Source: Chrysemys picta bellii | Lineage: Eukaryota | NCBI RefSeq assembly: GCF_011386835.1 | Contig: NC_088800.1 | Location: 69,068,001 to 69,132,000, forward strand | Reading direction: 5' to 3' | DNA length: 64,000 bases | Part shown: positions 2,474 through 63,101 of the stretch, one piece after another | How positions within the stretch are numbered: position 1 is the stretch's first letter | How the letters are laid out: every line of letters begins with the position of its first letter | Notes under the pieces: generated by a model | What the model was told of the DNA's origin: nothing | What the model saw: the letters and a program-made list of their open reading frames with translations, nothing else | Databases searched by the model: none | Program-made: the position numbers and the translations under genes

Positions 2474-18709
<16,236 letters not shown>

Positions 18710-23704: not shown

Positions 23705-23960
23705 GGGGCTTGTCTACACTACCCTGTGGTCTGTACTGGGGGGGGGGGGGGCGGTGACTAGAAGTGTGCGCCCAAGTGCTAGGCTGTAACTGTGGGTGTG
23801 AACTAAAAGGTTCCTAGTTCACATTGTCCTCTTCAGACAGGATTACATTTATGTGAACCTTTTAGTTTGTGCCCTCAGCATCCACATGGGGGAGTTACTT
23901 GGGTTTGCACTGCAATTCACACCCGCATAGTCCGAACTATGGGGTAGTGTAGACATAGAC
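23705..23960. mobile_element. non-autonomous PIF/Harbinger MITE
   Basis: termini GGCTTGTCTACACTACC ... GGTAGTGTAGACATAGAC share the GTCTACACTAC core with the full element at 37010-41206; followed by TTA. Confidence 0.7.
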
Positions 23961-24665
23961 TTAGCTTGTAAGCTTCTGCCATGGAATGAAGTGCATTGGG
24001 ACAGAAGGGGGGAAAATTGCATTTGTCTGTGCTAGGCACAGGGGAGTCCGCAGCTGTTGTGGTGGGACCTGGCAGCTCCCATGGTGCTGGCTCCCACCAG
24101 TCTTACACACTGTCCAACTATCCCATACATGTTCTCCTTTGACATACATGTGTCCCATAGTGAGATGTTTCCTACTTTTGGGTGGGCACTTTCCTAGGGC
24201 ATTTCCCATTAGAATTGGCCTTTTACCGCTTTCATGTTTCAATGGCCTGTCAACATGGGACAATGTACAAAATGAAAGGCCATGCTCTTGGACCCACTGG
24301 CCTAACTGGGTTGGGGGAATGTAGCTGTTCAGTGCTAATAGTATGCCAGCCACTACCGTTTTAAGGCACTGAAGTCATTTTGACTGATTCTTGCCCTAAG
24401 AGGTTAGAATTGGGGTTAATGGATGGCATCGAGACCTGTTTTCTGTACTTCGTAAAATACATGCAAGTATTTTGTGTATGCCTTCAGAGTGGTTTTGGCT
24501 GGTCTGAGGGGATGTTCCATATAGAACTTGGGTGGAACATTCCCTTTCCACGCAGGAGTATAAACAAACTTGGGCTCTGATGGGCCAGTAGTGAAAGCTA
24601 ATTCCAGAGACCCATGAATACCTTTGTCCCCACATTGCGGTGAGAACACCCCGTCTCCATCCTAG

Positions 24666-24985
24666 GAACTGTTGGCAAGTGGGTGTCTGCGGATCTCTAA
24701 TCTCAGGATGGAGTGATGAGCAAAGAGGTAGTCTCCAGTTCAGCTTTAAAGTGATCCTCTTCTTTGTTTAATTCCCATGACCGAACAGCAACCCAGTGTC
24801 TTACCACAGAGCAGGAGAAAGAAGCTGATGAAGCAGATATTCCCCAGAAAAGCCAAAGGGTGCAGTTGGGGTCTATTTTCACTCCTGCAGATCCTGTGTA
24901 AAGTATTCAGAGCTCAGTACCTGAAGAGCTCGCTCTTCGTGGCCCTACATGTTGTGCTTTTATTTTGCAGCCTGTATTTGAGGAT
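24666..24985 (+). pseudogene. relic ABCC exon 7/8-like segment
   Basis: ADL*SQDGVMSKEVV (cf. ABCC1 SDLWSLNKEDTSEQVV), then EQEKEADEADIPQKSQ (cf. ANEEVEALIVKSPQ), frameshift, then SLLQILCKVFRAQYLKSSLFVALHVVLLFCSLYL (cf. ABCC1 [35 protein letters not shown]; ABCC2 LMKALFKTFYMVLLKSFLL). Confidence 0.65.
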
Positions 24986-25148
24986 GTAATTCATGCAGGT
25001 CAGCAGACCACAAAATAAATTCTGTGTTAAGGAAAAGGAAGTAAAAAGGTTTTACTTTGAGACTGAGTCAAGTTCTCAAGCTTGGAGACACTGATCACAC
25101 TTCTCTTTTGTGGGGATGAGTGTCAGGTCACAAGGAGCCAATCCCCAC

Positions 25149-25310
25149 CCTGTGAGGAATTAGAGCCATATCTGTACAACTTATGAAAGCTGATTTGATA
25201 TTGTGAAATTGTATTATGAAAAAAATTGAAGTGTGTCTCTCTCTCTCTCTCGAGATGGACGCTTCAACATACATATATAAAAAATATGTCTCCACCATTG
25301 TTGATAGGAC
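25149..25310 (-). pseudogene. relic ABCC exon 13-like segment
   Basis: ctacag acceptor and in-frame gt donor, phase 0/0. VLSTMVETYFLYMYVEASISRERERHTSIFF vs V..TFSVYVLVD..ILDAQKAFTSITLF; an (AG)n expansion sits inside. Correct position after the exon 12-like piece. Confidence 0.45.
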
Positions 25311-25355
25311 CTGTAGCATGTATACCCTAGATAAATACCATCCCAAAAATTTTAC

Positions 25356-26126
25356 TTAAAAACTCAGTATCTTCTCCAGACTATATTAAGCATAGTGCAG
25401 GGATCTCAAACTCAAATCACCATGAGGACTAGTACATTGGTCTGAGGGCTGCATCACTGAAACCTTTTTCATACAATGATACAAAAATATAGTAAAAAAT
25501 GAAAAGTAATACAGTATGCTATTAAGTCAATGTATTAACTTTTTAAAAACCTGTAATGCGAAGAGGGGTTTTAATAAAATATACACACTCAGTAATGCAC
25601 CTCCCTCAAATGACAAAACACGCATTTACTTTTAGAATTACTTCAGTTAAAGCCCCCCTCCCCCCCCACCCCTGGCTCTTCTCCCACTCCACCACTTCCA
25701 TGAGGCCCCGCCCCTGCCCTGCCTTTTCCCACCCCTTCCCCAGCCCTGCCTCTTCTCCTGAGCGCGCTGCATCCCCACTCCTCCCCCCTCCCTCCTGGGA
25801 AGTCCTAAGTGCTGGGAGGGAGGCGGAGGAGCGGGGACCTAGCACGCTCAGGGGAGTGGGGACAGGGGTTATGGAGAGCTTGGCTGCTGGTGGAGTCGGC
25901 ATCTATGGTGGGCTGCAGGAAATAACTCTGCGGGCCAAATGCAGCCCGCAGGCCGCATGTTTGAGACCCCTACCGTAGCGCTTTATCAGCGGCATCTTTG
26001 TATTTTGTTATGGTTGGATCGTTCTTCATAAAAGTTATCTCCCAGGCATAGAACACAAGTCAATTAATCCCTGAAAGAATTTCATTGGTCAGGTTGATTG
26101 ATATGCCTTGGTCTCACCTGTCATTC
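25356..26126 (-). pseudogene. relic ABCC exon 12-like segment, split by a hAT insertion (25398-25972)
   Basis: tttttctgacag acceptor, then E*QVR.K.. and LTNEILSGIN*LVFYAWEITFMK (cf. ABCC1 [23 protein letters not shown]). After the transposon it resumes ...TEFL before a gtaaaa donor. Confidence 0.85.
25398..25972. mobile_element. hAT (Charlie/Buster-type) non-autonomous element inside the relic exon 12-like segment
   Basis: TIRs CAGGGATCTCAAAC / GTTTGAGACCCCTA; degenerate 8-bp TSD GCATAGTG / CCGTAGCG with central TA. Confidence 0.72.
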
Positions 26127-26191
26127 CTGTCAGAAAAACTCATATTTCAGAAATAAGTTGAATAGGTTGAATTCTAGTTGCAGATCAATAC

Positions 26192-26251
26192 TTGGACAGC
26201 TCTGCTAAGCTTAATACAGTCATTTAGCACAGGATTTAAATGGTCCTATAG
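26192..26251 (-). pseudogene. relic ABCC exon 11-like segment
   Basis: ctcag|CT ATA GGA CCA T[ttaaatc]CT GTG CTA = IGPSVL once a 7-nt insertion is removed (cf. LGPSVL). Ends NDCIKLSRAVQ|gtattg in frame (cf. NAVMAMKTKTYQ|gt); needs an internal deletion. Confidence 0.5.
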
Positions 26252-26450
26252 CTGAGATTGGAATTAATCCTAACCCACAGCCAGTAGAAACCCACAGCCA
26301 GCTGAAAGATCAACCTCTACGTTTTAAACCCCCTACCTAGCAACCCCTAAAAACTCAGTTCCCATGGAGGCAGGTTGAACACATCTGCACACAAATCAGG
26401 CCACCACCAATAGAGTCAGCATCTTGGAAAAGGTCATTGATTGTCCTCGC

Positions 26451-26604
26451 CTGCTGGAGCATCTATATTGCCACAGCTCTGATCAGAGGCTTGGACCATG
26501 AAGGCATCACAAGAATTCATCAGTTTCTGCACATCAGAGGAGATTGGATTTATAATCTCCCCAGAAGGTGAAGTCTTTCTTGCTGCTTTTATAATGACCA
26601 AGGA
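26451..26604 (-). pseudogene. relic ABCC exon 10-like segment
   Basis: SLVIIKAARKTSPSGEIINPISSDVQKLMN..., frameshift, WSKPLIRAVAI*MLQQ (cf. ABCC1 [45 protein letters not shown]). 154 nt vs 162 expected; acceptor ctgcaa and donor gcgagg are both one base off consensus. Confidence 0.82.
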
Positions 26605-26639
26605 TTGCAGGAAAATAACTTTATGAGGTAAAGTTTTTA

Positions 26640-26733
26640 AAAAACAAAACAGCAACCCTAAATGCATTCTTCATACCTCAGGCTAATGCTTTTGTGCACA
26701 GGCTACATAGCTATCCAGGGGTCATTCATTACC
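26640..26733 (-). pseudogene. relic ABCC exon 9-like segment
   Basis: ttcag acceptor, then VMNDP / WI(G)YV (cf. FVND..APDWQGYFY) and GMK..(R)VAV (cf. GMRIKTAV). Heavily deleted but in the expected place upstream of the exon 10-like piece. Confidence 0.42.
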
Positions 26734-27490
26734 CTGAAGGATGAAGACGGGTCTGCTAGCTATGTCACTGCCGATCGTTCCTCCCTGACCCCCTAAGCAC
26801 TTTGTTGGCCAGAGCAAGAGACAGTGGGCTAAGAGGGCAAAGGCCAAACTATTACCTCTTGCTGCTGAATTTCTTTCTTTGTGAACACATTTCTCTTGCT
26901 GTTTGGAGTGCACATGTCTATAGCAGAGAACAGCATATTGGATACAAAAACAGCCTTCATAACCTTATTGTTTGAGTCCCCCATGCACTTCGCTGCTGTT
27001 TACCAAAAGTTTTGTATATGTACAGTGGGTGCTCATAATGCTACCAGTCCATTTTCTTTTTGGGGTTTCTATAATGTAACCTGCTGGCACAATTCTTTTC
27101 CCTCAAAGTCATTTGTCTCCCTGAAGTGTCTGGCTGAATTTTTCTTGCATATGATAGATAAAGGCTTCAATGTGGACAGTGGGTATCAGAGTTAAATAGG
27201 AGGGAAGCTGCTCTGTTTAACTGTTCTCAATGGCCCCAATCCAGCAAAGCACTTGCACTCCTGTTTAACTTTAAACATACCGACTTCGAGCATGTGAGCA
27301 GTTCCACTGAACTTAAGCACATGCTTTGTAACCAAATCTTTGAAAACCTATTTCAGCAGCACAAAAATGTGGTGACAAATATCTGAGAAACAACTGGATA
27401 GCACAAAAGGGTGTCTGAATGCCATGTAGTTGACATGGAGGGATGCGGGATCTTCCAAAAAACACTTTAAAATGGGTGTGATGTCTACTT

Positions 27491-27553
27491 TTGCACGATC
27501 GTAGGATTTTTTTTGAAAGAATAGACATTCAGCCTAGTGCCCTCGTTAAAAAC
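27491..27553 (+). pseudogene. relic ABCC exon 14-like segment
   Basis: LHDRRIFFERIDIQPSALVKN vs ABCC1 [21 protein letters not shown]; a weak match supported mainly by its position just before the exon 15-like piece. Confidence 0.35.
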
Positions 27554-27803
27554 AAACAAAACAACTTTCCCTGCCCTGCTTTTGAGCTGATGTTCTGCCG
27601 GGCTGCCCTCCCCTCGTTCATCTCAAATCTGGTAGGATGCCACCTGGCAGTCAGTAGGCATTTTTACTTTGAGGTAAGGTGCTTTGGAATCCTGTGGAGG
27701 TAAAAGGTATTGTATATTAATGTAAAAGCCTATTGTTACTCTAAAAACCCTGTTCTCCATGCTGTGCTTTTATTTCCCCCTTTGACTGTTTTCGTTTGAG
27801 CAG

Positions 27804-28006
27804 GTGAGATTGCTATAGAAGATGGGACGTTCTCTTGGTCTTCATTGGATTCTGTCTCAGAAGGTACTTACGTGCTGTCACTTAAGGAGATCTCTCTCCC
27901 TTAGTTACAGGCAAAGAGCTGCTACTAGCAATCATGGAAGTTATGCACCTGCATATATAATGATTTTCAGCCCAGCCAATGTTCAGGCAGATGTCAGACT
28001 TCCTTG
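27804..28006 (+). pseudogene. relic ABCC exon 15+16-like segment (start of NBD1)
   Basis: gagcag acceptor in phase 1, then EIAIEDGTFSWSSLDSVSEGTYVLSLKEISL (NBD1 entry motif I.I.(N/D)GTFSW...LK.I.L), frameshift, then GKELLLAIMEV (cf. KGELVAIVGEV); ends at a gtaaga donor at 28007. Confidence 0.7.
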
Positions 28007-28026
28007 GTAAGATTAAGAATAATAAC

Positions 28027-28994
28027 TAGGGCCCTACTAAATTCATGGTCCATTTTGGTCAATTTCATGGTCACAGGATTTTTAAAATCCTACATTTCAT
28101 TATTTTGGATATTTAAATCTGAAATTTCATGGCCGTTGTAATTGTAGGGGTCCAGACCCAAAAAGGAGTTGTGGGGGGTCATAAGGAATTGTAGAGGGCG
28201 GTTGTGGTACTGCTACCCTTACTTCTGTGCTGCTGCTGGCAGGATGCTGCCTTCAGAGCTGGGCCCCCGCCAACAGCCGCTGTTCTCCAGCCAACCAGCT
28301 CTGAAGGCAGCACAGAAGTAAGGATGGCAATACCATGAACCCCCCTCAAAATAACCTTGTGACCAGGGCCATCCTTACCCTGATGCAAACTAGGCAGCTG
28401 CGTGATGCTCCAGCGGCCACCCCAATCCCCTGGCGGGCTGAGCTGGCCAGGAAGGCTGCCCCGCCCCCACTCCACCCCTTCCCCATAGCCTCTGTCCCCG
28501 CCCTGCCTCTCCCCACCCCACTGTGCCCCAGCCCGGTCCCAGCTCCATCCCCTCCCCTGAGCTACGTCCCGGGGAACTGCAGCAGGGGTCGGGCGCAACC
28601 TGCACTCACTGGGCGGTGGGAAGTGGAGCGACCTAACCCCAACCTGCTCTGCCGGCTTGTGCTGGGGGGTGGTTTCCCCCTGCCTTCCAAGCCTGCTCTT
28701 GCCCCTACAGACCTTGGGCACAGCCCTCACCCCATGGAGGCCTGGGGTCAGCCTCCCCACCCATGGAGCGGGGGCTGCATGTTGCACCAAAATGTCTAGG
28801 GACAGCCCTGCTTGGGACCCCCCCCCCGCAAGTTCCTTTTGGGTCAGAACCCCCAATTTGAGAAATGCTTGTCTCCCCCATGAAATCTGTATAGTATAGG
28901 ATAAAAGCACACAAAAGACCAGATTTCACAGAGGGAGACCAGATTTCACAGTCCGCGATGCGTTTTTCATGGCCATGAATTTGGTAGGGCTCTA
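28027..28994. mobile_element. hAT-like non-autonomous element (~970 bp)
   Basis: long TIRs TAGGGCCCTACTAAATTCATGG / CCATGAATTTGGTAGGGCTCTA, GC-rich interior; no clear TSD. Confidence 0.7.

Positions 28995-31585: not shown

Positions 31586-63101
<31,516 letters not shown>

Follow-up and report, generated by a model that had tools for sequence, protein, structure and literature searches.

A probable inversion of a ~0.9 kb block inside an ABCC gene relic between ABCC1 and ABCC6 of Chrysemys picta bellii

In human, the partial pseudogenes ABCC6P1 and ABCC6P2 lie beside ABCC6 (PMC5902450, PMC2329642), and a published survey did not report ABCC6-like pseudogenes outside primates (PMC5902450). Like these two human copies, the turtle relic described here is a non-functional ABCC6-related copy in the ABCC1/ABCC6/NOMO neighbourhood. 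However, ABCC6P1 and ABCC6P2 are recent primate segmental duplicates, which are ~95% identical to ABCC6 and have kept their introns, whereas the turtle relic is ancient, with a protein-level identity of only ~35–50%, fused exons and a probable internal inversion.

Gene relic between ABCC1 and ABCC6

The window (the whole stretch of DNA analysed, 64,000 nucleotides) contains the 3' part of ABCC1 on the plus strand, with exons at 4908–18706, and ABCC6 on the minus strand (63103–31589), the exons of which are mostly 92–100% identical to the Chrysemys picta protein. A run of N is present at 11526–11655. Between the two genes, on the plus strand, lies a heavily decayed relic of a long-MRP (ABCC1/3/6-type) gene, in which TMD1 and pre-NBD1 segments are recognisable and keep the order of the family. 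We interpret this sequence as the remnant of a further long-MRP gene, in addition to ABCC1 and ABCC6. ABCC6-clade proteins were the top scorers for the relic pieces, on the plus and minus strands alike, by small margins and with a profile that is rich in the ABCC6 clade. The exon-like pieces and the spacers are equally diverged between turtles, and the relic pieces on both strands evolve neutrally.

The exon-like pieces (Table 1) were evaluated in a targeted long-MRP profile test, with a profile of 23 vertebrate sequences and z-scores calculated against shuffles of the local sequence; this profile was used instead of one built from 40 ABCC proteins of metazoans and fungi, which recovered the exon 9/10 piece only. 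Gap costs in the protein-to-DNA alignment were recalibrated on reversed-sequence nulls; cheap long gaps chained noise on both strands.

Table 1. Features of the relic and its surroundings in window coordinates; aa, residues of the Chrysemys ABCC6 protein P0290
Feature	Position	Strand	Remarks
Exon 8-like	24876–24965/24980	+	aa ~307–341; HMM iE 0.009; profile z 10.5; left flank of the inversion, in gene sense
Spacer	24981–25397		Neither strand with a significant profile match; aligns to three other turtles
hAT-like non-autonomous transposon, high-copy	25398–25972 (575 bp)		Later insertion, outside the inversion event
Flipped block, most parsimonious extent	25973–26838 (866 bp)	-	Minimal 26024–26640; maximal 24981–26871
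Exon 12a-like	26098–25973	-	aa 498–522 robust, possibly to 536; z 15.7; left end of the flipped block
Possible exon 10-end/11-like	26304–26188	-	aa 446–486; weak; placed by collinear alignment, alone z 1.2
Exon 9-end and exon 10-like	26667–26484	-	aa 377–445; robust core 26515–26640 (aa 391–432); z 19.6
Right breakpoint zone	26668–26838		Last robust minus-strand residue 26667/26640, first plus-strand residue 26839
Exon 12b and 13-like	26839–26967/27027	+	aa 537–602, robust core aa 537–582; z 12.7; right flank, in gene sense
Exon 14-like	27103–27201	+	aa 603–635; core VSLKCLAEFF; collinear alignment; z 3.9 for 27106–27150
Exon 15-like	27803–27898	+	aa 636–664; GEIAIEDGTFSWS...; z 10.0 (27803–27841)

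A preliminary description of this DNA had placed exon 7/8-like sequence on the plus strand at 24666–24985; exon 8 was found within this range, with a tblastn E value of 1.7e-4 for its Dermochelys ortholog, but exon 7 was at chance level in the comparison of the profile with shuffles (z -0.7). The exon 12b/13-like piece obtained a profile score of 55.5 (null 20.8 ± 2.8) and tblastn E values of 0.006–0.1 against all references, and its Dermochelys ortholog scored 38.8 with the profile (null 19.6). Exon 14–16-like sequence had been claimed at 27491–28006, also on the plus strand. Exon 15 was retrieved there, with tblastn E values of 0.2–0.5 in the window and 0.001–0.003 for the Dermochelys ortholog, and exon 14 was located at 27106–27150, but neither exon 16/17 (z 0.5) nor the segment 27440–27720 (z 0.1) rose above chance in the profile test against shuffles. 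The plus-strand pieces are significant in the targeted profile test and in orthologs only, and not in database-wide single-piece searches. A Pfam scan of five relic pieces found no ABC family; in the PDB search, the match of the plus-strand exon 13 ORF (human MRP1 residues 562–594, E 0.38) was not significant and the exon 15-like piece had no match.

On the minus strand, the exon 9/10-like piece matched bovine MRP1 residues 395–437 in the PDB (E 0.004; HMM iE 1.9e-7), and its alignment is gapless through aa 403, inside the ORF 26667–26434. The coordinate first proposed for exon 10 (26604) proved to be the exact exon 9/10 boundary. For exon 9, previously placed at 26733, the end was confirmed up to 26667, but the first half, expected in 26668–26838, is unrecognisable, with a chance-level score at ~26733 (z -0.8). 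The exon 12-like sequence claimed at 26126 agrees with the exon 12a-like piece (26128/26098–26024/25973), which had tblastn matches to several proteins of the ABCC6 clade (E 5e-5 to 2e-4) and is also antisense in Dermochelys and Pelodiscus. The sequence at 26251, described as exon 11-like, falls where the collinear alignment places aa 446–486, but is weak by itself.

The fifth minus-strand piece of the preliminary description, an exon 13 at 25310, had a profile score of 22.7 (null 19.9 ± 2.9; z 1.0) and was at null level in Dermochelys too, where a long tblastn extension that seemingly supported it brought no gain in score under the profile. This assignment was rejected, the significant exon 13 being on the plus strand in both the window and Dermochelys.

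Flipped block and its ends

Along the window, the pieces follow each other as exon 8 on the plus strand, exon 12a and exon 10/9 in reversed order on the minus strand and exons 12b–15 on the plus strand, the arrangement of a two-break inversion. With the block re-inverted in silico, the profile-to-DNA score was 135, versus 64 for the plus strand, 96 for the minus strand and 35 for the reversed-sequence null, and a single collinear model spanning aa 307–648 was obtained (aa 307–341, 377–445, 446–486, 498–536, 537–602, 603–635 and 636–648), with resolution gaps at aa 342–376 and 523–547. Collinearity was judged by local profile alignment to the window's own DNA, database searches being conducted piece by piece, and the inverted state is taken as derived on the grounds that all ABCC genes share one exon order. 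The flip of one block restores a collinear exon 8–15 model, and a single inversion, as proposed in the preliminary description but here of a ~0.9 kb block inside the ABCC relic, is the best reading of these sequences, and in our view a probable one. The block is most simply 866 bp long, and not 1.6–2.5 kb as initially estimated, because exon 13 lies on the plus strand and the minus-strand piece at 25310 does not exceed chance; part of the length claimed corresponds to the later 575-bp transposon.

Alternatively, two independent fragments may be involved, a copy of exons 9–12 from a neighbouring ABCC gene having been inserted backwards into a relic missing those exons. The region does hold tandemly related ABCC genes, and the assignment of decayed pieces to paralogues has little power. 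However, the amino acid ranges of the two strands are complementary, the minus block (aa 377–536) filling the gap in the plus series (aa 307–341 and 537–648) with no overlap and no large gap, and no second copy of exon 12b/13 was detectable on the minus strand in the profile tests of the window and Dermochelys. Furthermore, the pieces on both strands lack introns that ABCC6 has, and they rank the ABCC clades alike rather than grouping with different paralogues. We therefore consider an origin from two fragments to be very unlikely.

The transposon abuts the flipped block on its left side and has TIRs CAGGGATCTCAAAC... and ...GTTTGAGACCCCTA and a decayed 8-bp TSD (25390–25397 and 25973–25980). 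Word depth is 600–84,000 in the element and ~19 in the flanking DNA, and unique contigs end at 25421 and resume at 25942. In Dermochelys, Carettochelys and Pelodiscus the element is absent and its flanks abut; it was therefore rejected as the cause of the inversion, being missing from three turtles that are already inverted.

The block ends are placed only to within ~170 nt on the right and, strictly, ~470 TE-free nt on the left, because neither exon 11 nor the first half of exon 9 can be recognised. On the right, the re-inversion score is flat for breaks at 26650–26825 and drops past 26850; the range of 26740–27470 originally given for this breakpoint is said to contain the revised zone. On the left, the score is flat for breaks at 24950–25950, and the breakpoint could lie anywhere from the spacer, probably what is left of intron 8 or else DNA inserted long ago, to position 26023. 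The former placement at 24990–25150 is compatible with the spacer, which carries no orientation signal, but would need a 0.4-kb insert in exon 12 before the inversion. Most simply, one break would lie inside exon 12, at about aa 522–548, rather than in an intron.

In a repeat search of the window, no repeat pair, inverted or direct, was found to join the two break zones, and the local alignment of the left zone with the reverse complement of the right zone scored 16 (null 18 ± 2.2), in agreement with the preliminary description, in which no obvious pair of inverted repeats was seen by eye at the breakpoints. NAHR between inverted repeats appears unlikely. A staggered-break signature, with inverted duplicates of the exon 8-end/exon 9-start or of exon 12b, was suggested by resemblances seen by eye and was rejected, all of them being at null level.

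The arrangement among turtles

The arrangement is not an assembly artefact, a possibility raised in the preliminary description. Contigs from three organisms bridge the right junction (X1, 25942–28048; X6, 25942–27369; X8, 26673–26975), and, for Dermochelys, Carettochelys and Pelodiscus, single blastn HSPs cover both junction zones and are collinear with the window, each of these turtles repeating its strand pattern. In Chrysemys itself no unique contig passes through the transposon, and the link across it is provided by the assembly and by the three species without the element. The lack of short-read contigs crossing the transposon, together with the chance-level scores of several of the pieces first claimed, could be taken in favour of an artefact or of chance similarity. 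However, minus and plus pieces occur together in single contigs of three organisms and in single alignment blocks of the chromosome-level assemblies of three other turtles, and the core pieces have z-scores of 10–20 and recur in orthologs. For the right junction and the core pieces such a reading has been refuted, and its overall probability is close to nil.

With the turtle topology of PMC8622242, the collinearity of the three other assemblies over the two junction zones dates the fixation of the inversion to before soft-shelled turtles (Trionychia) split from the other cryptodires (Durocryptodira); the Early Cretaceous fossil record of trionychids follows PMC10020266. The 10-kb flank in alligator contained only an NBD2 relic piece and the egret intergenic region no recognisable relic, and neither of these two outgroup regions showed the uninverted arrangement.

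By itself, the inversion is of little importance; as a neutral scar, its main use is as a rare genomic change common to all sampled cryptodiran turtles. It also calls for caution in annotation, since a spliced aligner working on one strand would recover only half of the relic exons and could miscall two fragments.

Missing introns, proposed history and known inversions

Introns 9 and 12 are both present in the window's ABCC6 and both absent from the relic, in which the minus piece reads through the canonical exon 9/10 boundary and the plus piece through the exon 12/13 boundary. This fused-exon architecture is shared by the two strands of the relic, and the fused exon 9/10 junction is also found in Dermochelys and Carettochelys. 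The relic keeps a spacer at the exon 14/15 boundary and another separating exon 8 from the block, and its 3' end is too decayed to be located. The fused exons are a hint that cDNA played a part in the history of the relic, and a plain DNA inversion leaves them unexplained.

It is conceivable that the relic, or its exon 9–14 tract, came from cDNA by reverse transcription and that a twin-priming-like switch put exons 9–12a backwards before exon 12b. The two introns are precisely missing in the relic of every turtle examined, and the topology matches that of twin priming, an inverted segment from the 5' side meeting a direct one from the 3' side at neighbouring points of the RNA (aa ~536/537). 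However, in the window, Dermochelys and Pelodiscus, exon 8-like sequence in direct orientation lies upstream of the block, which twin priming does not yield. Furthermore, the exon 14/15 boundary keeps a ~600-nt spacer, with a pyrimidine tract and CAG before it, which argues that the relic was not fully processed, and it would take a great coincidence for a retrocopy to land precisely between the two paralogues closest to it. We regard this origin as quite unlikely.

Under the preferred reading of a single inversion, a block corresponding to exons 9–11 and the first two thirds of exon 12 would have been excised at two points, one just upstream of or within exon 9 and the other inside exon 12, and re-inserted backwards. 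Given that the breaks lack inverted repeats, we infer that the likeliest mechanism would be either a template switch during replication or the end joining of two double-strand breaks, and the inversion would have been carried passively since its fixation. It shows no sign of function and is an ordinary structural scar in a pseudogene.

As one break probably lies inside coding sequence, the inversion would have destroyed the gene, if this was still alive. The break in exon 12 might even have inactivated a third ABCC1/ABCC6-type transporter gene in an ancestor of the turtles, after the loss of several introns through recombination with its own cDNA. This scenario is an unlikely one; if true, the relic would bear witness to an intron-loss event as well as to the death of a vertebrate ABCC paralogue not recognised before. 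For the separate question of whether a third long-MRP gene has been lost between ABCC1 and ABCC6, the inversion provides a datable character.

The relic resembles the twin-priming 5' inversions of LINE-mediated retrocopies in its inverted upstream segment, which meets a direct downstream one at neighbouring transcript positions, and in the lack of some introns, but differs from them in its direct exon 8 upstream, at least one intron-like spacer at a canonical boundary and its site between paralogues. Micro-inversions in neutral vertebrate DNA likewise consist of a sub-kb to kb segment flipped in place by two breaks and end joining and, like the turtle block, have no flanking inverted repeats, are fixed, are common to related species and are functionless. 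Unlike the usual micro-inversions, the turtle block is recognisable only through the interrupted exon order of the relic.

Exon-like pieces in the ABCC1-ABCC6 spacer

The tblastn search with full-length ABCC proteins, gathered via a search with a single ABCC1 exon, placed ABCC1 and ABCC6 tail-to-tail, with the relic located in the 12.9-kb spacer between them. Most exons of the minus-strand ABCC gene were 92–100% identical to the Chrysemys picta bellii proteins P0290 and P0293, and these two proteins and P0306 all fell within the ABCC6 clade in our tree. The three are isoforms of one turtle ABCC6 gene, and their public names alternate between "multidrug resistance-associated protein 1" (partly "MRP1 isoform X4") and "ABCC6". 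The window is of turtle origin and also carries a SINE typical of turtles.

A profile HMM from 23 vertebrate long MRPs, used in a six-frame search of positions 19–31.5 kb, yielded the matches listed in family order in the table. The same picture was obtained by tblastn with nine references, and is independent of any single reference; the minus-strand exon 10 piece also matched solved MRP1 structures (residues 395–437). Each candidate stretch was further aligned with a position-specific profile (P0290 numbering) and compared with 200 shuffles. In this test exon 7, the first half of exon 9, exon 10-end/11, exon 16/17 and the stretch 27440–27720 were at chance level. The minus-strand exon 13-like piece at 25310 reported in the preliminary description did not hold up (z 1.0; null level in three tests and in Dermochelys), and exon 13 is clearly on the plus strand, at 26839–27027. 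Word depth was moderately raised, to 3–15 times the single-copy level, in 27114–27381 and 25104–25371; both stretches thus belong to repeats that are old or of low copy number. Within the former, 27262–27303 resembles the exon 16 start, probably by chance.

Features of the relic and of the flanking ABCC genes (aa numbering of relic pieces on P0290)
Feature	Position	Strand	Method or score
ABCC1 3' part, exons	4908-18706	+	tblastn, full-length ABCC proteins
ABCC6, aa 343 to end	63103-31589	-	tblastn, full-length ABCC proteins
HMM match, profile 302-334	24870-24968	+	iE 0.009
HMM match, profile 390-430	26634-26512	-	iE 1.9e-7
HMM match, profile 494-520	26101-26021	-	iE 0.76-7
HMM match, profile 550-595	26887-27015	+	iE 0.059
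HMM match, profile 634-650	27806-27856	+	iE 0.23
Exon 8		+	z 10.5, significant (200 shuffles)
Exon 9-end/10		-	z 19.6, significant (200 shuffles)
Exon 12		-	z 15.7, significant (200 shuffles)
Exon 12b/13		+	z 12.7, significant (200 shuffles)
Exon 14		+	z 3.9, significant (200 shuffles)
Exon 15		+	z 10.0, significant (200 shuffles)
Collinear model, aa 307-341	24876-24980	+	
Collinear model, aa 377-445	26667-26484	-	
Collinear model, aa 446-486	26304-26188	-	weak
Collinear model, aa 498-536	26098-25973	-	
Collinear model, aa 537-602	26839-27027	+	
Collinear model, aa 603-635	27103-27201	+	
Collinear model, aa 636-648	27803-27841	+	

Extent and origin of the flipped block

With our own profile-to-DNA aligner, which permits frameshifts and long gaps, the region as assembled scored 64 on the plus strand and 96 on the minus strand (null, sequence reversed but not complemented, 35). 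The in-silico re-inversion that had been proposed as a check, here of 25960–26789, raised the score to 135 and gave one collinear model in the traceback, in which the amino-acid ranges on the two strands are complementary and fit like a jigsaw. In a breakpoint grid, the score was flat for right breaks at 26650–26825 and dropped past 26850; it was flat for left breaks across 24950–25950, because the spacer 24981–25397 has no readable orientation. Exon 12 is in two parts, at the block end (about 25973–26023) and in the plus-strand piece from 26839, so a flip of 25973–26838 (866 bp) is the most economical solution, which puts one break within exon 12 and a second one within exon 9 or shortly before it. 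The flipped block initially described is real, but it is smaller than the 1.6–2.5 kb proposed, and exon 13 lies outside it.

The minus-strand ORF 26667–26434 passes the exon 9/10 boundary without a gap (26605/26604), and a plus-strand piece passes the exon 12/13 boundary (about 26895). The ABCC6 gene of the window has introns 9 and 12 (528 nt and about 750 nt), with normal GT/AG ends (62921/62392 and 58680/57924). The relic lacks exactly these introns, with exons fused on both strands, and the fused junctions were also found in other turtles. For the pieces of both strands, ABCC6-clade proteins scored best, followed by ABCC1 or ABCC3, in a comparison of low power. The fused-exon architecture on both strands and the non-overlapping amino-acid ranges argue for the plus and minus pieces being parts of one gene copy. 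Given the exact absence of introns 9 and 12, the relic is intron-poor, yet not fully processed. This points either to cDNA-mediated loss of introns from the ancestral gene or to a partly processed origin.

The missing introns led us also to consider a reverse-transcription origin of the flipped block by twin priming, which yields an identical junction topology. This explanation fails for three reasons: exon 8 is in direct orientation upstream of the block, exons 14 and 15 are separated by a spacer at their canonical boundary, and the relic sits between its paralogues. The two break zones share neither inverted nor direct repeats, in agreement with the preliminary description, which saw no inverted repeats at the breakpoints, and recombination between repeats is therefore unlikely. 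The inversion probably arose by two breaks and end joining, or by a replication template switch.

Assembly support and age of the inversion

Logan contigs of four runs were placed on 24300–28300. Contigs X1 (25942–28048, 1 mismatch) and X6 (25942–27369) each contain the minus-strand block together with plus-strand pieces, and the right junction was crossed by a contig from a third organism (X8, 26673–26975). No unique contig in these runs spanned about 25392–25971, an extremely high-copy repeat (depth 600–84,000 vs about 19). About 23% of the words of 24300–28300 were found in patchy low-depth contigs of X15 and X16, two small runs that may be RNA and come from a fourth, slightly diverged organism; these contigs could stem from transcription of the relic or simply from DNA sequenced at low coverage.

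For other species, the sequence downstream of ABCC6 was obtained via their ABCC6 proteins. In Dermochelys, 23877–25398 and 25976–28364 of the window aligned as two abutting blocks, as they did in Pelodiscus and Carettochelys, with single HSPs over both junction zones, and the strand pattern of the exon-like pieces was identical in all three. The inversion is thus common to Testudinoidea, Chelonioidea and Trionychia and is older than the Trionychia/Durocryptodira split. This split is bracketed by the origin of Cryptodira in the Early Jurassic and by trionychian fossils of Early Cretaceous age (PMC8622242; PMC10020266). Exon-like pieces and spacers were equally diverged (identity of 86–91% with Dermochelys and 75–85% with Pelodiscus), so the whole region drifts neutrally. 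We conclude that this is a genuine inversion, of ancient origin and neutral.

Positions 25398–25972 are occupied by a 575-bp hAT-like non-autonomous transposon, with hAT-like terminal repeats (TIR CAGGGATCTCAAAC...) and an 8-bp target duplication that has decayed (GCATAGTG / CCGTAGCG), extremely high-copy in three related organisms. The element is not at this site in Dermochelys, Carettochelys or Pelodiscus, making it a lineage-specific insertion marker; it was inserted later than the inversion, and its contact with the block end is fortuitous. A second very high-copy element (28027–28994; depth up to 290,000), with 22-nt terminal inverted repeats (28027–48 and 28973–94), comes just after the relic's final exon-like piece.

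Outgroups and previous descriptions

The sole relic piece in the alligator 10-kb flank was an NBD2-like sequence (L003, the Alligator mississippiensis locus, 55993–56654, minus strand of the locus), decayed, with in-frame stops, some 6 kb downstream of ABCC6. It is on the strand expected for the same third gene, so the relic may be older than the split of turtles and archosaurs. Nothing recognisable of the relic was found in the egret spacer (L001, 34470–43125). The uninverted arrangement was found in neither the alligator flank nor the egret spacer, so the change is polarised by the exon order, which does not vary within the family.

A survey of vertebrate ABCC6 reported one ABCC6 in tetrapods, and ABCC6-like pseudogenes in primates only (PMC5902450). 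The turtle relic, and hence also its inversion, appears to be undescribed.
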